A model generated the notes under the pieces. The model did not search any database. It had not been told where the DNA came from and saw nothing but the letters and a program-made list of their open reading frames with translations. From positions 1 to 64,000 of the forward strand of contig NIVC01000702.1 in the NCBI GenBank assembly GCA_002269645.1: a DNA stretch of 64,000 nucleotides, in the 5' to 3' direction. This document shows, piece by piece, positions 11,212 through 61,641 of the stretch. This DNA is from Macrostomum lignano. Lineage: Eukaryota. Both the position numbers and the translations under genes were made by a program. Position 1 is the first letter of the stretch, and each line of letters opens with the position of its first letter.

Positions 11212-14172
11212 TTAATCAGCACGAACCCGCTTCATCAGTGTCACTACTAGCGAGCTGTCATTGCTGGCCGTCCTCAGCTCGCACCTGTGTGTCGCACTGG
11301 GACAGGCAGACTCGGACACCGCACGGAACTGAATGACTCCGGTGAGGTGCCACAGCTCAGCTTGGATCACGTCAATCAGTATGTGCTCTGGATCAGCTGT
11401 TAAATTCAAATAGTCGCCAAAAGTTTGTTTAAATTTGACAATCAATTTACAATTACAACAGAACGTAAAATTTATACCTTTTGGAACGGAGACTGATTGA
11501 GCCAGATTAGCCATGTCGTATCCATCAAATTTACAGGTGATAGTTCTGTAGCAGCTTTGGGCTCGGGGTATCGCTCCAAGAAACTTGTATGTAGTTGATG
11601 AAGATCTTGAGAGACTGCTGCCTATCAACTGCATGCGAATTTTCTCAGACCCGCCTCCACAGTCGCGATGCAGTCGACAATTTGCTGATGGAGTATTGTC
11701 GACGGAAGTTACCGACACAGCGAAGGAAGGACCAGCTGCACTGCTAGTCGTCCATTTCGAGAGATCCCACCGGATATCCGGAGCGTCTGAGTGGGAAAAT
11801 ATTGAAGCCTTATCGCCTCCTTTTCTTACCATTGATAATAATAATAACAATAATAATTGATTATATCTGCCCCAATCGGGCCAGATGGGCAACCGACAGC
11901 TCAGCCGCAGCTATTGCGCGGCGCTTCTGAAGGCTGCGTACGGCTGTTCAGTCCAAGGACTGGGGGGGTCGCCACACACAATTTTCTCAGCTAATGCTGG
12001 CACCCATTTTACAGCTGAGTGAACTGAAGCAATGCAGAGTTAAGTGTCTTGCTCAAGGACACAAATTGTTCCGATTGGGTCGAGAGTCGAACCTCCGACC
12101 TTCAAATCACGAGTCAGACGCTCTAATCACTAGGCTACAACCCGCTTCTATATATTGATAAAGTAACCAGGGCATCAATATAAGGGCAATATGTTCTCTT
12201 TACAGGAATGATTATTAAAATTTGTCACAGTTTGTGCTTGATTAGTTAAAACAAATTGTTATATAGACAAAGCAGTTGGCACTCACGGTTTTTAGTTAAG
12301 CGAAAGTCAAGTCGGTAGACTGAATTTACGAAAGCTAAGATGACACTGTGGTTGAACTGAAGCTGATAGCTAGGACTCTGGCCATGAACGATGTACCGGT
12401 ATAATTCAGGAAAACTGCTGTTTGGAACAGTGCCGTTAAAAATTCTGACACTGCCATACCGGTAACTGTTGCGATTTTCATCAATACGAGTTATTCTGAT
12501 TTTTAACAAGAAGTTCTGGGGAACAACAAGGCTATAATATGTTCTGTAGCGGCGCTGTAACCGACGCAAAAACACCGCGGACTGAAACTGTGGATGAGTG
12601 GTCCGACTGCCGCTCTTCTGCCTGATGACTTCCGTAGCACCTGAGAAATGCAAGCGAGTATTCTTTGTTTGTTACCACCGAAATTGATGAGCATGCTATA
12701 GGAAAGCATTGAATGTGCCCTTACCTGGTATTGTTTGATTGCTTGTCTCATAGGTAAGCCGGAATCCCTGATCAGTGATGGAGCGGTCAATGACAAATCG
12801 AATAACTACGGGACCGGTGAGCCAGAACTCTGATTGCAGCGAGTCGGGGCTGTTTACCCTAAAACTTTCTTCGTCACTGTTTAAATATGTCGTTATTCTC
12901 TCATAGATTCGAACACTGTCGCAGCAGCGTCGAAGTTGCAGTCGACTGAATTTGATAATCACAGACAGATTCGAGTCGATGGTCCACATGATTCCAAAGT
13001 TGCTGTCGTAAACTTTACCAATCGTGTCCAAACCGCCCGGTAGATAGGAAACGACTCCAGACTTTGAGCTCAGAATAGAACGGCTCTCTTTTGCAGCTGT
13101 TAAAAATAATAAAATGATCAAGCACTCAACCCTTCTCAAGCAGTAGCCATTCCCTTTAAAACACCACAGCTCACTTACTTATACTGAATTTAAACTCAAA
13201 TCCAGGTCTGACTACTCCAGAATCAGTCGAAAAAATGAAGGTGACACTGTGCTGAAACTTATAGAAAGGTAAGCTGAGGCTTCGATTGCCGGATAACTCC
13301 AGCATTGCATAACGGTTTTGATGCGGTATCAGACCACGATAAGTATTTAGTTTGTCACTCCATTGTTGTGTAATAAATTTAGTAAATTGAACCAAAACTT
13401 CATAGTTAGAAGGCACGAATATGCTCCAGCATTTTCGGTAGTTATTGGCATAGTCTTCATCCCCAGGGTGGCTCTTTCTGACGCCAATATTTTGTCTGAT
13501 GATCTCAGCGGCGGCTGCAAATCGTTTGGAAGCAAACCAATACGTTATTCGTCTCTTAGAGCAAATATTTACAGCTCAGCAAGTTCAGCAAGGTAAAGTG
13601 TGGATTCAACAGTTAAAAGCTAAAATACAAAATTTTGTCTTTTCAAATGAGTAGTTAAATTTGTAATCAGCTAGTATCTTACCCGGAATCGATTCACTCC
13701 GAGTCTGGTAATTAAGCTCGAATCCAGTTCCCGTACGAGAGCCACCAGTCCTCTGAAACCTCACAACGAACGGTGCAGTCAGCCATAACTCGGAGTCAAT
13801 GACGTCAGAGTACCTTAGCCTGAACCTCTCCGTGCTCTCTAAGGCTGAGCTGGTATTTTCATAAATTGAAACTCTGTCACAGCAACTATTCACATCGAGC
13901 TTGGTGAACTTGATCATCTTCACTCCGCTTGATTGCACAGTCCAGGACACACTCATGTAGCTTGAGCTGGACTGGCATGAAATCGTTCCGCTAGGTGAGT
14001 AGACAGTGCCTCCTGAGCAGGAAGCTGCAATACCAAAGTGAAATACTAATTATTTCTTTAATATTCGATCGGAAATGTGTAAAGTTTGACCAGCAAGATT
14101 TTAATTACCAGCAGCTAGTTGTAGCCTGAATATTAAAGTAAGAATGGCAATGTAGCAGGTGGCTGCTTGCAT
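11212..14172 (-). CDS. Secreted multi-CUB-domain protein, about 680 aa (exons 14172-14109, 14024-13683, 13514-13179, 13096-12725, 12640-12287, 11786-11212)
   Basis: Exon 1 encodes a signal peptide (MQAATCYIAILTLIFRLQLAA). The next exons each encode a CUB-like domain (e.g. SHPGDEDYANNYRKCWSIFVPSNYEVLVQF...FSTDSGVVRPGFEFKF; MWTIDSNLSVIIKF...CCDSVRIYE...VIRFVIDRSITDQGFRLTY). All five introns are phase-1 GT-AG, and the summed CDS is 2043 nt, open to TAA. Confidence 0.85.
11834..12146 (-). mobile_element. tRNA-derived CORE-type SINE with (TTA)n tail, in the last intron of the CUB gene
   Basis: The head has box A (TAGCCTAGTGA) and box B (GGTTCGACTC). The central TGTGTCCTTGAGCAAGACACTTAACTCTG...CAGCTGTAAAATGGG closely resembles the MIR/CORE domain, and the 3' end is a TTA repeat. 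Confidence 0.85.
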
Positions 14173-22774: not shown

Positions 22775-50113
<27,339 letters not shown>

Positions 50114-51103: not shown

Positions 51104-54100
51104 TCAACTAAAAGCTAGGAAGCAGCGATCAAAGCTGTCCAGCTTCCTCCTGACTCGCTCCAGCCTCTCGTTGTCGCAGCTGTCCATGGCAACCCGTGGC
51201 TCCCTAGCAACAACCGCCTCCATTCGCTCCAGGCAGAAGCGGAGCTGCACCGGGCTGTCAGTGTAGTGGGCCAGCGTCGCCAGCTCCTCCGTGTCCAGCT
51301 GCGATCCCGCAGACTCAGCCTGCAGCTCCAGGAACCACTGCTGCGCCAGCCTCTTGGCGAATCCCGAGCCCGCAGCTCCGTCGGCTCGAATGCATGCCGC
51401 GCGCCGACCGCCCAGCAGCTCAGCTTGCAGACTCCAGCTCAGACAGCGGAAGTTCACGTACAGGTGGCGCTGCATCGGTGAGCGGCTGCAGAGTCGAGCA
51501 GTGAGCAGCGACTCGGTGAACCTGGGTAAAAACGGCAGGCTGGGCCGCCGGTCGCAGGGCAGGCAGAACCTCCAGGCCCAATCGGTGCTCAACGGCCATC
51601 GCCAGCTTTGAGTCTCCGATATGGCCTCTTTGCTGAGGTCTTCGACCGTCCAGCCGCTGCTCATCACCTAGAATTGTTATGATAGCATTTAACAAGTGAG
51701 CAATGCTTGTTGATTTCATGCATGCTTGAGTCTTTACAGCCCTTAGCTGCTGTCTTTGCATTGGCTTAACCAAAAAAATTCTCGGTGCCTTTTACTGACG
51801 TCTGGAACCCATAGTCACAACTTGAATTGCAGTCCTACTGAATAAGTACGCTAAGTGGCCTTGTGAGGTCTGAAACGCCTGTGCAATGGCATCCTGGTTT
51901 ATCGCAAAGCCCTCTTCTTAACAAGCCAATTGAATCTCTTAGCTCTGAAGTTGACTTGCGTCTTCAGTATCCTAGCCAACAATCTGGTCTCGGTCATTCG
52001 GAAGGCACAATCACCCTAAGACCCACCGCTCCGCTCTGATCTTTGGTCTTGGCGTGGCAGTTAACAATATCTACATCTACATGTAGCACGGAGCTGATTG
52101 TTACGGCCTTCTTCATCACAATCTGCTATCAAAAAGCTTCCGAAACGTACGAAGTGTTTTCAAAAATAAATGTCAGTGGACGTACATCTTTGCTCGAGCA
52201 CATGCTTTCACCTTTTTTATCAACACGCTTTTACGTTTACATCCTGTAGTGCACCTGCTCCAAGGTCATTTTAATCTCAACAGTACAGTTTATCTTTTAA
52301 CCTCTAGAAGCTGTTTAAGTTTTCCACTCCCTTGACGAAAATGACGTAAGTTCAACCATCAGATAAGGCAAAGGTCATTTAAGGTCAAGCAAAGTCCGGT
52401 GTAGCAGAGGTCATTTAAGCTTTCCCGTAATCAGATCACTTTCAACACTGCGACTGGAGTAGGAACGAGTCCTGAGAAGCCTTCCAACAATCGCAACAAT
52501 CGATCGAGCTCGGTGGTGATTATATGCATCTTGAGATGTTGAACTTGTTGGGAAATTTCTACTGAAAGCCTCTCATACCTACCGAAGCAATGGAGGCTGA
52601 TCGCATTGGTGCTTGTTTGCTTTATAAGTGAAGCTACAATGAGTCATGGAGCACTTTACTTGACCCCAGTCTCGGCAACACTAAAATCGTGTGATACCTA
52701 TCACAAAAACGGGTCACATTTCTCACCTGATGTCTCACCAATTCGCTCAGCGTCTCCTTCGCCGCAGTTTTGTTCCTGTACTTCAGCTGCGCCATCACAG
52801 CCAAACACCTGACCGTGCAGTGACACCAGCTGCACTCGTACCAACTTTCAAGCTGCCGCATCAGAGCTCCTTCGCCATCCACTTCGTCTGCAGCTTGCAG
52901 AGCTCGCAAAGCCGCCGCCACTGAGCAGTAAAGTCCAGCGAGCTCAGTAGCGTCTGGAGCTTGCGATTTCCGGTCATGAGGCACATCGGGAGGCAGAGTC
53001 AAAGGTAGCAGAGTGAACAAGTCGAAATACAGCTTGTCATCATCATCCAGAGGCTTCAGGTGGCTCATCAGCTTCTTGACTGCGGGTTCGAGGTCACTCC
53101 GAGCTTTGAGCAGCTCAGCTCGAATTCGAGTCTTGGCCTCATCCACAGGTCTTCTAGTCCATTGTAGCTGCAGCTGAACATGTGGCTTGAAGAAGCTGGG
53201 CATGCAACCATCATCACTCGAGCTGGTCGAGTCCAGGAACTTCATCATCAAGTCCAGGGCCTCTTTGGCGAGTTCTATCAGCTTGTGCGGCTGCCACATT
53301 TGCCAGTTCCACGAGCCGTGAGTCTCAATCAGGTAGAACAGCAGGTGCTTAACGTGATGACTCGTTAGTCCCGGACACTGCGACACCTCGGCCAGGTAGT
53401 TTTTGAGTAGGAACTTGAGCAGAATGAACAGCTGGCCCTGGACTGTGTTCAGCTGTCGCATCCGCTGCTTCTCTTCGATAGCGAATGTCTGCTGCAGGTG
53501 GATTAGGGCTGCATCACGAATGGAAACCAGAGGCAAGAGCAGAGCGCTCGCTGATTGAGGACTCCGAAATGCCAAGGTAGTGCTGGTAGCTGGCCTGAGA
53601 CCGCACGGAGCTGAGGCCACTGGAGGCTGCTGGCCAACTGCAAGACAACAAATGGTTTGACACGCTTTAGCAGGCAGAGAAATACAAAAGTTAAAATCAA
53701 CATAGATTATAATTAATTCTTTCTACCGACGCGTTTCGGACCAACAATGGCCATCTTCAGGGTCTGGTGTATTTTTAACTCACACAACAACTTTATAAGT
53801 GAACAAATGTTAACTGTACAGTCCAAAGGGCATGTCATGGGCAGAATTTTCCAAAAATGTTAAGCATAGATTGCAAGTACATTGTTCAGACTTGTGGTCG
53901 GCCAATACGTTAGTAGACTGAAATCCCATGTTCCTCTTGCTCTGGCGGCAGGTGTTGTGTACAAGTTCTCTTGTTCTGTTGACCAGAACATTACCCATAT
54001 AGGTAAAACTAAAATGCACCTGTACACCAGAGTCAGAGAGCATTGGTTAAAAAGGTCGGCTATCCAAGACCACCTGCTTTGTTGCAACAGTTGTTGCGAA

Positions 54101-57100
54101 ATTGAGCAAACTCAGCAGTTTAAAATTATTGATCGGTGTAGAACTGATTTTAGGCTCAACATACTTGAATCCATGTACATTAAAGACCAAAAACCTAATC
54201 TGAATATTCAGCTCTCCCATAGTGGTGCGGGCCATTTGCTCAAGGTATTCTAAGTAAAGGCACAAGTCTGAACAATGTACTTGCAATCTATGCTTAACAT
54301 TTTTGGAAAATTCTGCCCATGACATGCCCTTTGGACTGTACAGTTAACATTTGTTCACTTATAAAGTTGTTGTGTGAGTTAAAAATACACCAGACCCTGA
54401 AGATGGCCATTGTTGGTCCGAAACGCGTCGGTAGAAAGAATTAATTATAATCTATGTTGATTTTAACTTTCGTAAATGGTTTGACATTGACAGTTTTGGG
54501 TACCGACTAAGTCGTATTGGTGATATGATTTACGGCTGATTGCGGACTCCTTTGACTCACATCCCGATGCGTCATCTTCTACAGTGAGCAGCTGGGCGCC
54601 CTCCTCTTTATCGGGAGGGTCTCCGGTGAAGTCCAGTCGCAGCTTGGTCGCACCTGGGCAGCCAGCAGCAGCCGTAACGGGTGTCAGCCAGTCGATCCCG
54701 GACCCATCAGAAAGCCTCGCATTCAGCCGTGTCAGACTGCAGCCCCAGCCGTCAGCAAAGCTGCCGATCAGATGGGGTTTGGAGAGGCTCAGACAAGCGG
54801 CTGTCCGCTCCAGTAAGTCTGCCAGCCTCTGCTGACAAGCCGCTCTGCTCTGGGTGAAGCCGGAGCTCGTGAGGACCCAGTGCAGTTTCTCGCTGAGCTG
54901 AGAATCGTGTAGGTCAATGTCACTGCAGGTAGGTTGAGACGAACTTTAGTATCGCTTTTTAAGCTGCGCATCTATTGCCTATACATGCACTGTACTTTCT
55001 ACTAAGTAGTGTGTACCTGTTACCCCATGTATAGAAACTATTGGTAAGCCGAATGATTAATTTATGAAGCTTCGCGTTCAATTCAAATCTGAATTGCGGA
55101 AAGGATGTAATTGTACTCACATTTGACTCTTTTCAGGCACTGTCTGTTCAAAGGTTCTGAAATGAATTTTTAAAAGTGAATGCTGCAAGGCAAGAATGGT
55201 AAAAGCACAGCTTGACTGACAACTTTTGAGTCAACTCTTGGATTTAATTTTATTTGATTTGATGATTTGATGACTTAATTTGCGTCAGTGAGTCAAAAGA
55301 CCAACTGCTCAAACTGACACACTGACACACTATACTCACCCAGTTGAAGCAGGGGATGTCAATTTAACGTTCCCCTCCTCTGCCAGCACCCAAGTTGCTT
55401 GGTTCCGCCCGCACAGCCGAGCTCTGTCCAGCGCTGTGCAGCCCTGAGTGTCTCGCACCTCTCTGTCAGCTCCTCGCTCCAATAGTTTGGCAATGACGTG
55501 GCAGTGACCCAGCTCGGCGGCAAGCATCAGAGTAGTGCTGCAGAGTTGGTCATCCAGCCTTTTGTTGACGTCTTGAATACTTGGCAATATGGCGGTAGCC
55601 AGGGCGGAGTGACCGTGAGAGAGGCTGGAGCACAGCAGCTGATGAAGCTGGTGCTGATTTGCGTTGAGCAGGATTTTCTGAATATTTTAGCATGAATAAA
55701 TAAATAACCAATAGCCATTCGTTCTTGAGTGTAGTTAGTGCATGAAGTTATCAAATGTTATTTTAATATTTGCAAATTAACAATTCGCAATTTATAAAAG
55801 ATCTTCTAAGTATTTCTTGCACGCAAATGTTTTTCCAAGAGTTTTTTTTCGAAGAAATCTGTTCAAGGTTCTGGTTAAGATCGACCAGTTCCTGGGAAGT
55901 CGACCAGTTTACATTATTAAAGTGTAAAATCAAAGTTGGGCTGAGGCTGCTAATAGAAAAAGAAAGGCTTGTGGCTGTAAAAATGACTTAGACTACTTAA
56001 TTAATCAATTTCTTGATAAAATTGCAACCCATCCTAAATTTCGTAAGGTATTCCAATGCTATTTCCAATGGTAAAAACATGTAAATAGGCTAATCATAGA
56101 CTGGGTGTGGCTGGCTGTAAAGCTGACTCAACCAGAGATAAGATTGCACCCACCCCACAGGAAAGGGTTGGGTGGTTGAATAGTCAGTCGGCTATAGTCA
56201 ATCGATAAGATTGCACCCACCCCACAGGAAAGGGTTGGGTGGTTGAATAGTCAGTTGGCTATAGTCAATCGATAAGATTGCACCCACCCCAACACATGAC
56301 TAGAGCTGCTATTGGCTAATGAAAACGCTCGTGTTCAAGCAGAAGCTTGAAAAAGAGTGGTGGTGGCTGTAAAAATCGACCGCAAAGTTAATCGATAAGA
56401 TTGCACCCGCCCAATCCCACAATAACGGTGAATGGTTGAACACTTAACTGAACCGATTGAATAAGTACGATTATTACTCAATAAGAATAAGCAAGAGCGC
56501 ATCACTACTTGCTTTGGCAGAGAACAGACAGAAAAAAGACCGTTACTTATTGCAAGCTAGTATACCCCATCCAATTAAAAGCTATACTTTTTAACCTGTA
56601 AGTTTTTGTTTTCCTTTCCGAATAGATCGAAATCTAATACTGTAGCTTCTTACTTTTACATAGTAGTCCTCTCCTATGGCGACAGTTTCAGCTAAAAATT
56701 TCAGCAGGTACAAATTCTTCGTCGAATTGTCGGCCAGATAGATGCCATGGTTTGTTGTTCCATTTCTGATTAGCGATGATTGAGATTTTTTTAGACAGTT
56801 TTTGTAGGCGTTTACTCTTGCGGACTCGCTGTAAAATTTGAGCGAGGGGTACACTTATCTGAATTGGCGAAATGCTCAACTCAGATCCCATTACAGTCGC
56901 CTGATTTTTCAGCCCATGATCGCAGCTCCCGGTCCTGGATTTCTCATATGGATTTTCGATCCCCAGATTCTCAATTCAAGATTCTTGATCCCCGGATCCC
57001 CAGATTCCTGATCCCCAGATTCTTAATCCTCAGATTCGTAATCCCTAGATTTCCGATCCCCAGATTCTTAATCCCCAGATTCTTAATCCTCAGATTCTTA

Positions 57101-60100
57101 ATCCCAAGATTCTTATTTCCCCAGATTCTTAATCCCAAGATTCTTAATCCCTAGATTCTTAATCCCAAGATTCTTAATCCCCAGATTCTTAATCCCTAGA
57201 TTCTTAATCCCAAGATTCTTAATCCCCAGATTCTTAATCCTCAGATTCTTAATCCCAAGATTCTTATTTCCCCAGATTCTTAATCCCAAGATTCTTAATC
57301 CCAAGATTCTTAATCCCTAGATTCTTAATCCCAAGATTCTTAATCCCTAGATTCTTAATCCCAAGATTCTTAATCCCCAGATTCTTAATCCTCAGATTCT
57401 TAATCCCAAGATTCTTATTTCCCCAGATTCTTAATCCCTAGATTCTTAATCCCAAGATTCTTAATCCCTAGATTCTTAATCCCAAGATTCTTAATCCCCA
57501 GATTCTTACGAGTAATTTTCAGATTCTTAGCTGGAAATACCCAGATTCCCGATCCCCAGCTTCCCAATCCCCAAATCCTCAGCCTCCCAGTTTAGCCACA
57601 ATGAATCAAAATTATTACCTGGCTCCATCGTCCTTAATCAGTCGAGTCAGGCTGACAGCCACGCTCAGTTGATGTCTTGCCTGTGCAGCCAGCCTGGCCC
57701 TGTCGAGGCACTGATCCTCCATTGCTGCACAATCTGCAGTCCCCGCCGCCCAAGCGGCAGTCCGAAGGTCGCCGCCGGTTGCCGCGGTTTCTGCTACCAA
57801 TATTAGCAATTTCTGCTTCGGAGTAATTCTTCTCTCCAAAAGCTGATCATCGGGAAGCGGAGGCGGCAGCAGTTTGATCAGCTCTTCTAGAAGGTTGCTG
57901 CGGCCTAACTTGGCGACTCTCTCGGCAGCCTCCAAGCAGAACCGCCAACGATTTGCTGGGCTTTCTATTCGAGGTAAAATTTTCAGACCAATCGCGATGT
58001 GCTGCTCTGTGACCGCATCGGATTCGTTTAATAAAAGTCCAAGGACGCGGATCTTCACGCCCTGGTTGGGCGAGTCAGCCACCAGAGATGGAAGCAGGTG
58101 GAGTCGGCCAGAGAAAAAGACTGCTTCAGCCAGGTATTTCAGACAGATCTGCTCATTAGAAGTCCTAAGGGGTGTGCGGTAATATATGTAGTGTCTCTTC
58201 TATTGTCTGTTCTATCGTCTCACCACCTGTTCTATCGTCTCACCACCTGTTCTATCGTCTCACCACCTGTTCTATTGTCTCATCACCTGTTCTATCGTCT
58301 CACCACCTGTTCTATCGTCTCACCACCTGTTCTATCGTCTCACCACCTGTTCTATCGTCTCCATTTCTGTTCTATTGTCTCACTACCTGTTCTGAAGTAT
58401 TCATATCATCATTATGGACCCCTTCAATCATTTCAGTACGTCATCTATCATCTTAAATATGTACCCTAACAACCCAATTAATACTTGTTTACGGGTCTGT
58501 AGCTACTGTAATGTGTATCGCTTTCCAAGTCAGTTTTTATCAGTTAAAATCATATGGTTGAAATACTACTCAAGCCAGCTCCTACCCATTGAGATGTTTC
58601 ACCAGTCGCAGAAACTCCTCCGTCCGACCCCTCTGTTCAGCAATGAGCAACAGTTTTTCGAAAAATCTTCTCTTGACTGGATTCATTAAATTTGATGCTC
58701 GCCGAATACTGATGTACGAGTGAGTGCCCGACGATTTAGCGATGCATAGCAACAGTTGAACCGCAGCCTCGAACCGGCCCGCACGGGCAGCCTTGGCTGC
58801 CGACTTACTGCAGCACAGGTCTCTCTTAAGATCGTCCGAAATTGTTGCAGCCAAAGCCTGCAGCGCCGCAGTGTTGCCATGCAGGGCCAGATCAGCAATG
58901 AGGCCTTGACAGAACTCGTTTCTGCGTTGCCCGACTGCCAGCTTGCTGTGGTAGCGCTCCACTAGCTTTGGTTGACCATCGATCGCAGCTTGCTTCAAGG
59001 CTCGCTGCCAGAACAGCTCTGCAACCCTGACATCGCCAATACTAGCGAGGCAGTGCGCCAAAAACTTCCAACTCGGGTGACTCAGCAGCGATTCATAATC
59101 GATTGAAGTGGAGAGACAGACAGCGGAATGAGCCAGACTGATGAAGCACCGGATCTTACTTGTGAAATGGCACTGATCGACAAGCTGAAGTTTATGAATT
59201 AGTGCTTGAGTGAGTTCACGAGTTTATGAGCGAATTTATAAGTGAGGTCATGTGTTCATGAGTGAGTTCATGAGTGAGTTCATGAGTGAGTTCATGAGTG
59301 AGTTCATGAGTGAATTTATAAGTGAGGTCATGTGTTCATGAGTGAGTTCATGAGAGAGTTCATGAGTGAGTTCATGAGTGAATTTATAAGTGAGGTCATG
59401 TGTTCATGAGTGAGTTCATGAGTGAGTTCATAAGTGAGTTCATGAGTGTGTTCATGAGTGAGTTCATGAGTGAGTTCATGAGTGAGTTCATGAGTGAGTT
59501 CATGAGTGAGTTCATGAATGAGTTTATGAGTGAGTTCATGAGTGAGTTCATGAGTGAGTTCATGAGGGAGTGAGTGAGTAAGTGAGTTCATGAGTGAGTT
59601 GATGAGTGAGTTCATGAGGGAGTGAGTTCATGAATGAGTTCATGAGTGAGTTGATGAGTGAGTTCATGAATGAGTTCATGAGTGAGTTGATGAGTGAGTT
59701 CATGAATGAGTTCATGAGTGAGTTCATGAGTGAGTTCATGAGTGATTTCATGAGTGAGTTCATGAGTAAGTTCATGAGTGAGTTCATGAGTGATTTCATG
59801 AGTGAGTTCATGAGTGAGTTCATGAATGAGTTCATGAGTGAGTTCATGAGTGAGTTCATGAGTGAGTTCATGAGGGAGTGAGTGAGTAAGTGAGTTCATG
59901 AGTGAGTTGATGAGTGAGTTCATGAGGGAGTGAGTTCATGAATGAGTTCATGAGTGAGTTGATGAGTGAGTTCATGAATGAGTTCATGAGTGAGTTGATG
60001 AGTGAGTTCATGAATGAGTTCATGAGTGAGTTCATGAGTGAGTTCATGAGTGAGTTCATGAGTGAGTTCATGAGTAAGTTCATGAGTGAGTTCATGAGTG

Positions 60101-61641
60101 ATTTCATGAGTGAGTTCATGAGTGAGTTCATGAATGAGTTCATGAGTGAGTTCATGAGTGAGTTCATGAGTGAGTTCATGAGGGAGTGAGTGAGTAAGTG
60201 AGTTCATGAGTGAGTTGATGAGTGAGTTCATGAGGGAGTGAGTGAGTAAGTGAGTTCATGAGTGAGTTGATGAGTGAGTTCATGAATGAGTTCATGAGTG
60301 AGTTGATGAGTGAGTTCATGAATGAGTTCATGAGTGAGTTCATGAGTGAGTTCATGAGTGAGTTCATGAGTGAGTTCATGAGTGAGTTCATGAGTGAATT
60401 TATAAGTGAGGTCATGTGTTCATGAGTGAGTTCATGAGAGAGTTCATGAGTGAGTTCATGAGTGAATTTATAAGTGAGGTCATGTGTTCATGAGTGAGTT
60501 CATGAGTGAGTTCATAAGTGAGTTCATGAGTGTGTTCATGAGTGAGTTCATGAGTGAGTTCATGAGTGAGTTCATGAGTGAGTTCATGAGTGAGTTCATG
60601 AATGAGTTTATGAGTGAGTTCATGAGTGAGTTCATGAGTGAGTTCATGAGGGAGTGAGTGAGTAAGTGAGTTCATGAGTGAGTTGATGAGTGAGTTCATG
60701 AGGGAGTGAGTTCATGAATGAGTTCATGAGTGAGTTGATGAGTGAGTTCATGAATGAGTTCATGAGTGAGTTGATGAGTGAGTTCATGAATGAGTTCATG
60801 AGTGAGTTCATGAGTGAGTTCATGAGTGAGTTCATGAGTGAGTTCATGAGTAAGTTCATGAGTGAGTTCATGAGTGATTTCATGAGTGAGTTCATGAGTG
60901 AGTTCATGAATGAGTTCATGAGTGAGTTCATGAGTGAGTTCATGAGTGAGTTCATGAGGGAGTGAGTGAGTAAGTGAGTTCATGAGTGAGTTGATGAGTG
61001 AGTTCATGAGGGAGTGAGTGAGTAAGTGAGTTCATGAGTGAGTTGATGAGTGAGTTCATGAATGAGTTCATGAGTGAGTTGATGAGTGAGTTCATGAATG
61101 AGTTCATGAGCGAGTTCATGAGTGAGTTCATGAGTGAGTTCATGAGTGAGTTCATGAGTAAGTTCATGAGTGAGTTCATGAGTGATTTCATGAGTGAGTT
61201 CATGAGTGAGTTCATGAGGTAGTGAGTGAGTGAGTGAGTATATTACACAAGAAAGACAGTTCCAGTTACCAGGTCTTTATAATCTGGCGAATTTTTAGTC
61301 GTTCCAGGGGCACAGTCGAGCTGCACTAGCGAACTAAAAAAGTCACTCGTGGCCGCGTACTTTGCCACAGCATTCTGACAGCAGCGGAAGCCTATGTGGT
61401 GACTGCAGATGCTGAGCAATGCGGACGTCAAACTGCCGCAGGGACAGTCAAAATCCAGTTTGCTGTCTACAGCCTGACACAGAGCTGTCACTATTCTGTC
61501 TACTGTGTGGCAATGCTGCTTAAACAGTTCGTCTTCATCGGCTGAGACCATGACGCAATCATCTCGATCAGCAATATTAAAAGCTCTTACAATGAATTTT
61601 AAACGCCTCTGCGAGGCAATGTAATGAGATCGGCTCACCAT
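51104..61641 (-). CDS. Helical-repeat + ankyrin + Mab-21/cGAS-like (cGLR) nucleotidyltransferase-fold protein, about 1288 aa (exons 61641-61270, 59184-58586, 58164-57619, 56828-56654, 55677-55340, 54922-54561, 53637-52727, 51667-51104)
   Basis: All seven GT-AG introns are phase-compatible (0,2,2,0,2,1,0), giving 3867 nt open to the stop. The ankyrin segment reads TTLMLAAELGHCHVIAKLLERGADREVRDTQGCTALD and the NTase N-lobe reads HLIGSFADGWG...SGIDW. The Mab-21 C-lobe reads TFAIEEK...QGQLFILLKFLLK...GLTSHHVKHLLFYLIE...W...L...MPSFFKPHVQL. The start codon is uncertain. Confidence 0.8.
53725..53763 (-). ncRNA. Minimal type I hammerhead ribozyme (inverted copy; sense to the cGLR-like pre-mRNA)
   Basis: It is the exact reverse complement of the 54394-54432 motif. 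Confidence 0.8.
53882..54253 (+). pseudogene. Penelope GIY-YIG endonuclease fragment
   Basis: A 123-aa ORF with a VVY...HIG motif and the EH/DH histidines. No RT is present. Confidence 0.85.
54394..54432 (+). ncRNA. Minimal type I hammerhead ribozyme (Penelope pLTR)
   Basis: The elements are CTGAAGA (54397-54403), stem II GGCCA/TGGTC, GAAA, palindromic ACGCGT stem III, a GTC cleavage triplet (54427-54429) and a short ACC/GGT stem I. Confidence 0.8.
56137..56290. repeat. 67-bp tandem duplication (GATAAGATTGCACCCACCC...)
   Basis: The motif starts at 56137, 56204 and 56271, with a partial copy at about 56394. Confidence 0.85.
56950..57510. repeat. 15-bp minisatellite (CCCAAGATTCTTAAT)
   Basis: About 36 tandem units. 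Confidence 0.95.
58205..58395. repeat. 20-bp minisatellite (TCTATCGTCTCACCACCTGT)
   Basis: About 9 copies. Confidence 0.93.
59205..61240. repeat. 12-bp minisatellite (GAGTTCATGAGT) with 308-bp and 1084-bp higher-order repeats
   Basis: About 170 units. Identical or near-identical repeat-ORFs in the track recur at offsets of 308 (59630/59938) and 1084 (59328/60412, 59630/60714). Confidence 0.97.

Follow-up and report, generated by a model that had tools for sequence, protein, structure and literature searches.

A head-to-head Penelope-like element remnant with two opposed hammerhead motifs in an intron of Macrostomum lignano, probably an ordinary and inert insertion

A stretch of 64,000 nt from the flatworm Macrostomum lignano (GenBank assembly GCA_002269645.1, contig NIVC01000702.1, positions 1 to 64,000 of the forward strand; hereafter the window) was analysed with respect to a long perfect hairpin, which bears two hammerhead ribozyme motifs and is located in the intron of a minus-strand gene. 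The hairpin is probably an ordinary, dead 811-bp remnant of a Penelope-like element (PLE), inserted in head-to-head layout and equipped with the usual hammerhead of such elements, which lies inert in the intron and does not constitute a regulatory device.

The anatomy of the insert was read directly from the letters of the window. Exact 13-bp direct repeats (AAATGGTTTGACA) flank the 811 bp (53663-54473) on both sides as a target-site duplication (TSD), and no third copy was present in the window at up to 1 mismatch; at 1 mismatch, shuffled controls gave 0.18 matches on average, with two matches in 3 of 100 shuffles. A repeat search returned inverted arms of 214 nt (53683-53896 and 54261-54474), in which a single mismatch was located by base-by-base checking (53686/54471), leaving a perfect complement of 210 nt (53687-53896 and 54261-54470) around a loop of 364 nt of unique sequence. 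The insert is asymmetric, a feature absent from the original prediction: left duplication and left arm are separated by 20 nt (53663-53682), whereas the right arm directly adjoins its duplication. On the minus strand these 20 nt read UUUCUCUGCCUGCUAAAGCG; they occur once in the window at up to 3 mismatches, have no counterpart at the right end and would, judged from their position, represent a PLE tail. No second copy of the element was found elsewhere in the 64-kb window.

The identity of the element was likewise accessible directly, via the open reading frame (ORF) of 118 stop-terminated codons at 53897-54253 (+). Pfam reported no family for the 118-aa fragment alone, and a word-indexed protein search returned one weak relative; an exhaustive profile search gave 1439 relatives, to the C-termini of which the fragment was aligned, including those of proteins of 769-879 aa. 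RVT_1 was detected in the long relatives, and the GIY-YIG cut-off was also passed by two of the related proteins (P0003, 63% identical to the fragment, and P0093). The GIY-YIG catalytic columns are conserved in the alignment, the window copy having H at Y34 and M at R40, both of which are nearly invariant positions. PLEs encode a reverse transcriptase (RT) followed by a C-terminal GIY-YIG nuclease (PMC8557442), and the combination of RVT_1 with a C-terminal GIY-YIG domain in the long relatives therefore assigns the insert to this group. The alignments thus support the view that the insert is the remnant of an endonuclease-bearing PLE, from which the RT was lost and only the endonuclease end was retained.

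Each arm contains one hammerhead sequence, ACC-CUGAAGA-U-GGCCA-UUGU-UGG(U)CC-GAAA-CGCG-UC-GGU, with ACC and GGU forming helix I; the core of the plus-strand copy starts 144 nt past the ORF stop. The core (CUGAAGA ... GAAA ... UC) agrees with C3-U-G-A-N-G8-A ... G-A-A-A ... U-H, with positions 3 and 8 able to pair. A structural descriptor, which was composed after the motif had been seen and has a palindromic helix III built into it, matched only the two arm sites in the whole window, compared to 0.04 matches expected per shuffled window. Four traits of metazoan PLE hammerheads were listed by Cervera and de la Pena (PMC4209133), the fourth being consensus families full of covariations. Three are present in the window motif, namely an unpaired nucleotide after A9 (a U between A9 and G10.1), the G10.1-C11.1 pair and a palindromic helix III (ACGCGU), and the fourth was seen in the relatives described below. 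The G10.1-C11.1 pair is kept only in a helix II register with a bulged U, which is the register chosen by the covariance model; the contiguous register places an extra C before GAAA. A comparable variant is the hammerhead of Penelope from Drosophila virilis (PMC4209133), in which helix II is bulged, helix III contains a palindromic insert and helix I is very short (2 bp, compared to 3 bp in the window), although the sequences are unrelated. Two small features were additionally observed within the motif: an 8-nt palindrome, AUGGCCAU, in the 5' strand of helix II (54402-54409, +), and an AUG (54403) exactly at the start of stem II, the frame of which (54403-54444, +; mirrored at 53754-53713, -) ends after 13 codons and is the tail of a 41-aa ORF common to both arms.

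Conservation of the hammerhead was observed directly in 31 loci encoding relatives of the endonuclease fragment, of which 23 extend 245 nt or more past the ORF and were counted; the contigs of the two closest relatives (L001 and L002) stop 29 and 63 nt past the ORF and are too short to hold a hammerhead. A minimal hammerhead on the ORF strand was present in 20 of the 23 loci, 81-594 nt past the ORF. The 3-8 core pair covaries among the loci (C-G 6, U-A 7, A-U 1, G-C 1), and six control cores without 3-8 pairing gave 1 match in total; the strand bias was 15:0. Helix III palindromes in these matches were required by the descriptor and hence are no independent evidence. For model building, two MAFFT alignments were set aside (A3, with loop 3 misaligned, and A4, with gaps inside the 3' strand of helix II) in favour of the subset whose loop 3 has 2 nt (A5). 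In the relatives' alignment, 91% of the cells were paired and 12 of 12 pairs changed on both sides, the covariation score being 0.91 (0.21 in shuffles, 0.08-0.14 in slid controls) for an alignment that was fitted to the structure; the inner pair of helix III also covaries in the model-based alignment (CG 7, UA 5, GC 4, AU 2). Covariance models built from the relatives only were then run over the whole window with filters off (128 kb searched), and the two arm motifs ranked joint first with both the R1 model (19.3 bits, next best 10.8) and the R2 model (22.4 bits, next best 16.4). These results support the assignment of the arm motif as the hammerhead that this PLE lineage usually carries in its 3' region or pseudo-long terminal repeat (pLTR).

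In the original prediction, the hairpin had been described as Penelope-derived, with perfect 210-nt arms, a 13-bp TSD, one minimal hammerhead per arm and a cut after 53728 on the minus strand. All of this stood: the arms held base by base, the TSD is exact with two copies only in the window, the hammerheads were recovered by core, descriptor and relatives' models with the same predicted cut, and the GIY-YIG fragment with its 1439 relatives, the long ones containing RVT_1, bore out the Penelope origin. Terminal inverted repeats of 210 bp flanked by a TSD would also be expected of a fold-back DNA transposon or an element resembling a miniature inverted-repeat transposable element. The probability of this explanation is negligible, as the loop encodes the C-terminal GIY-YIG domain of PLE proteins, the arms are the 3' region of that same ORF with the lineage hammerhead, the ends are asymmetric and the window holds no further copies; the PLE-derived interior and arms exclude such a transposon.

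The path of integration was deduced from this anatomy. The PLE endonuclease would have cut the two strands of the target at positions 13 bp apart, and both nicks would have primed reverse transcription. The first complementary DNA (cDNA), of 577 nt, would have comprised the end of the GIY-YIG ORF and the 3' region, and the second, of 214 nt plus the 20-nt tail, would have comprised the 3' region only, RT having started at a more distal site. Head-to-head joining of the two cDNAs would then produce arms that are identical at birth, the unique 364-nt loop and the 13-bp TSD. Compared with this scheme, both outer ends of the window insert are element 3' ends, one reaching 20 nt further than the other, and the nicks would be 13 bp apart.

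Each element of the scheme has a counterpart in described PLEs. An inverted 5'-truncated copy beside a forward copy, together with a short tail at one end, is typical of PLE insertions, the TSD length being variable (PMC8557442). The head-to-head insertions shown by Craig et al. 2021 (PMC8557442, Fig. 2) share with the window the abutting inverted and forward copies, the 3'/pLTR terminal repeats, the one-sided tail, a TSD of variable length and the pLTR hammerhead; in the window, the forward copy is cut to 577 nt without RT, and the tail measures 20 nt compared to 30-40 nt. A purified PLE protein cuts the target on both strands and extends them, and RT starts at two nearby internal sites which delimit the tail (PMC11167929). 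In this in vitro system (PAc, Poseidon of Anolis carolinensis), the two-strand cleavage and extension would account for two outward-facing 3' ends and the two RT start sites for the tail; PAc also has an AUG at the start of stem II, which starts an ORF there, whereas the window frame stops after 13 codons and the window family is known from sequence alone. In Schistosoma mansoni, dual minimal hammerheads lie on opposite strands 100-700 bp apart (PMC4209133). Cervera and de la Pena 2014 attributed this arrangement, in another flatworm, to truncated PLEs, and the motifs are likewise minimal type-I, helix III being palindromic and a single nucleotide remaining unpaired after A9; PLE lineage and host differ from the window, where the copy is resolved by base, with its TSD and its intronic position.

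The layout also recurred among the 31 related loci. In an ENA metagenome contig from another organism (L003, 2759-3739), the inverted arms of a truncated PLE match perfectly over 373 nt around a loop of 235 nt, with hammerheads on opposite strands, and a diverged version of the head-to-head layout was found in L031. The independent contig and the literature together argue for the hairpin being a routine outcome of PLE integration. They also bear on the concern that the perfect inverted repeat arose during assembly or sequencing, for example as a fold-back chimera; exactly identical arms can be suspicious, and tandem or inverted PLE structures are known to trouble assemblies (PMC8557442). An artefact is nevertheless extremely improbable here: apart from the recurrence of the layout in an independent contig of another organism, the insert lies in the interior of a contig-scale window and shows a unique loop of 364 nt, a clean 13-bp TSD, an asymmetric tail and one terminal mismatch, and its removal restores a plausible 99-nt intron.

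Table 1 Features of the insert and of its host gene in the window (1-based positions; strand given as + or -, or as a dot for none)
Feature	Position	Strand	Basis
Downstream host exon to stop codon, weak Mab-21_C match	52634..53637	-	open frame and Pfam
Putative host intron, GUGAGU...UUGCAG, 923 nt, phase 1	53638..54560	-	ORF continuity across junction
Left TSD copy, AAATGGTTTGACA	53650..53662	.	direct repeat; only two copies in window
20-nt tail, outer end of inverted copy only, putatively of the PLE	53663..53682	-	unique
Inverted, more heavily 5'-truncated second copy of PLE 3' region (left arm)	53683..53896	-	repeat search and base check
Hammerhead, minimal type-I, sense to host pre-mRNA; predicted cut between 53728 and 53727	53725..53763	-	descriptor and relatives' covariance models
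Forward 5'-truncated PLE copy, 577 nt: endonuclease ORF end and 3' region	53897..54473	+	protein relatives, GIY-YIG columns
PLE ORF, last 118 codons and stop (54251-54253), GIY-YIG domain	53897..54253	+	aligned relatives
Right arm, PLE 3' region (pLTR part), begins 8 nt past stop codon	54261..54470	+	repeat search and base check
Hammerhead, minimal type-I, sense to PLE, antisense to host; predicted cut after 54429	54394..54432	+	descriptor and relatives' covariance models
Right TSD copy	54474..54486	.	direct repeat
Upstream host exon, IGSFADGWG...SDGSGIDW stretch, no own Pfam match	54561..54945	-	open frame

The position of the insert in a minus-strand intron, as originally proposed, was upheld. 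The donor GUGAGU begins at 54560, and the acceptor would be UUGCAG ending at 53638, with the frame resuming at 53637 and the stop codon ending at 52634; without the insert, this intron would measure 99 nt. The choice of the acceptor, also adopted in the original prediction, is ambiguous. An alternative in-frame acceptor at 53509 (-; GUGAUGCAG, followed by CC), 129 nt downstream of 53638, drops 43 low-complexity codons and gives a product with 58% identity and fewer gaps relative to the only related protein found (A0A1I8FBG2, a Macrostomum lignano model named "FAM178 domain-containing"), compared to 48% identity for the 53638 product. Since 53509 fits this protein better, the true exon boundary is uncertain. 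A0A1I8FBG2 and the window protein share a long, nearly identical stretch; the model lacks KPHLIGSFADGWG...SDGSGIDWLT (window 54565-54924), the stretch that would hold the nucleotidyltransferase (NTase) GS motif, and for its C-terminal part, other frames or exons near 51.1-51.7 kb are used. Either the gene was modelled wrongly, or A0A1I8FBG2 represents a degenerate paralogue. No record was returned when the host ORF, the PLE ORF, the 41-aa arm ORF and A0A1I8FBG2 (P0001) were looked up as exact sequences.

The host had also been labelled as a cGAS-like receptor (cGLR) with an NTase domain split by the intron, and this label is weak. Pfam reported for the host a lone Mab-21_C match of 23.3 bits (E = 7e-5), below the cut-off of 24.1, with no match in the upstream exon and no NTase-core family in the host protein; sequence searches of the PDB with the host protein gave noise only and no relative. 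A single-sequence, exon-only structure model was unusable (mean predicted local distance difference test score 39). By eye, a GS motif is present in the translation (IGSFADGWG), and the acidic residues of SDGSGIDW form a non-canonical dyad; from these features, the host protein may be a divergent Mab-21-like protein. On the same strand, upstream of the Mab-21_C-like exons, ankyrin repeats are encoded at 55339-55686 (-; Ank_2, 31.9 bits), perhaps as part of the same gene.

As the PLE is antisense to the host, the pre-mRNA contains, in this order, the right arm and the ORF fragment, both in antisense, and the left arm in sense with a single hammerhead. With hammerheads on opposite strands, any transcript carries one hammerhead and its antisense, not two. 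Fold energies were computed directly for these parts. The predicted fold of the whole intron is the full arm duplex (-499 kcal/mol, z = -34); the hammerhead monomer alone reaches -10.3 kcal/mol (z = -0.17), is no stabler than shuffled sequence and has a minimum-energy fold that is not of hammerhead shape, and the 49 nt of the hammerhead paired with the antisense arm reach -100.8 kcal/mol. When two copies were cofolded, the minimum-energy contact was made via the AUGGCCAU palindrome and not as a hammerhead dimer through ACGCGU. During transcription the antisense arm would emerge first, and the sense arm would then zip onto it. With the complementary arm transcribed first, the emerging hammerhead can be captured, and since the loop-proximal arm ends meet first, the duplex may close before transcription has completed the hammerhead, which lies 136 nt into the second arm. 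The resulting duplex of about 210 bp would hide the single sense hammerhead, and the insert would leave with the spliced intron. TSD and tail (UUUCUCUGCCUGCUAAAGCG) provide a pyrimidine-rich stretch and a branch-like UGCUAAA about 29 nt before the 53638 acceptor, and splicing may therefore well survive. In published in vitro assays, PLE hammerheads did not cleave as single copies and did so only weakly as dimers (PMC4209133, PMC6765202); in one active PLE, cleavage depended on the protein of the element itself, and RNA-seq reads with ends at the site were not found (PMC11167929). On the basis of these folds and precedents, the sense hammerhead is most likely inert in the host intron.

In the original prediction, an intronic switch had been proposed, by which the pre-mRNA either forms long double-stranded RNA (dsRNA) or self-cleaves at 53728 and so tunes a putative nucleic-acid-sensing gene. 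The minus-strand hammerhead is indeed sense to the host pre-mRNA, as a single copy about 90 nt upstream of the proposed acceptor, and conserved intronic hammerheads are known in amniote genes (PMC6155905). The latter, in RECK, CTCL and DTNB, are also type-I motifs of retroelement origin, intronic and sense to the gene; they differ in being conserved across classes, with full helices and loop-loop contacts, whereas the window has a minimal motif in a young insertion with a perfect antisense arm. The switch is very unlikely, and no feature of the sequence favours it: each transcript holds one sense copy only, the predicted monomer fold is not that of a hammerhead, the competing duplex of about -100 kcal/mol over the same 49 nt would form co-transcriptionally, published single PLE hammerheads were inactive in vitro and dimers weak, the layout is a generic by-product of PLE integration (PMC8557442), the identical arms point to a recent insertion instead of a conserved device, and the cGLR label of the host is weak. 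A narrower variant was considered, as PLE hammerheads can be protein-assisted (PMC11167929) and host cutting might accordingly be confined to PLE-active cells: the sense hammerhead would cut the host pre-mRNA only where an active PLE protein is expressed, and elsewhere the hairpin would feed the small interfering RNA (siRNA) pathway. We give this variant a very slender chance; if true, it would link transposon activity to the expression of a Mab-21-like gene, possibly one of innate immunity.

In animals, Dicer processes long perfect hairpins, and dsRNA elicits a response in M. lignano; in Drosophila, hairpin RNA (hpRNA) loci yield endogenous siRNAs. The insert could by analogy be an hpRNA-type source of siRNAs against this PLE family, perhaps also silencing the host locus in the nucleus, that is, a by-product with an effect. 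It shares with hpRNA loci a long near-perfect inverted repeat in one transcript, the perfect 210-bp duplex dominates the predicted fold of the pre-mRNA, and siRNA production would be plausible if the host gene is transcribed. The window hairpin differs from hpRNA loci in having neither known small RNAs nor a sign of selection for its structure, and the intron may be spliced out and degraded fast, which makes this role unlikely.

The absence of any difference over 210 bp suggests a recent insertion or conversion between the arms. We infer that the insertion is young and represents a neutral or mildly harmful expansion of the intron. Hammerhead-bearing PLE derivatives are common in introns, where about 43% of Xenopus copies are located, and are still depleted there relative to intergenic sequence (bioRxiv 10.64898/2026.07.22.740005).

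Several points weigh against the interpretation as an ordinary, inert PLE remnant. Rfam (4227 families) reported no hammerhead, neither in the whole window at gathering thresholds nor at E<=10 in 53600-54600, which is why the motif was tested by other routes. The window motif is unlike all 20 relatives found by the descriptor in that either helix II must contain a bulged U or GAAA must be preceded by an additional C, and the relatives' models gave E values of about 0.18 (19.3 bits) and 0.07 (22.4 bits), which are borderline alone and roughly calibrated. The tail is shorter than the published range. Look-ups of the window ORFs retrieved neither a full-length copy of this PLE family nor an empty-site allele, so that youth and polymorphism of the insertion are deduced solely from arm identity. 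Finally, the statements on splicing, cleavage and small RNAs derive from sequence and predictions.

Other features of the window were recorded alongside the insert. ORFs of a retroelement of the Ty3/gypsy type, with long terminal repeats in its class, occupy 31226-35991 (-) and comprise an 877-aa ORF with RVT_1, RNase H and integrase, and upstream ORFs with an aspartyl protease and a zf-CCHC gag knuckle. An exon-like ORF matching the E1-E2 (P-type) ATPase family was found at 38429-38953 (+; 65.6 bits). The sole Rfam match at the gathering threshold was a weak transfer RNA (tRNA) at 12075-12144 (-; 31.5 bits, cut-off 29) with a shortened T-arm, possibly representing a pseudogene or a repeat derived from a tRNA. 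Minisatellites abound in the window (54 TRF rows at a score of at least 150, with periods of 12-143 nt; for example 231-974, 23808-24838, 27371-29500, 42845-44459, 44984-46083 and 59254-61239), and several of them create long spurious ORFs.

The locus adds one more copy, of the usual form, to a known kind of element, and past annotation it matters little. It provides a clean, base-resolved head-to-head PLE insertion with its TSD, a one-sided tail and both outward 3' ends, and agrees with recent in vitro work in which both strands of the target were nicked and extended by a PLE protein. For annotators, the insert enlarges a 99-nt intron to 923 nt, with an ambiguous acceptor. Perfect intronic hairpins with a "ribozyme" in flatworm genes should be read first as products of PLE integration; if small-RNA or RNA-end data revealed activity at this locus, it could serve to test the action of retroelement-derived ribozymes on transcripts of their host.

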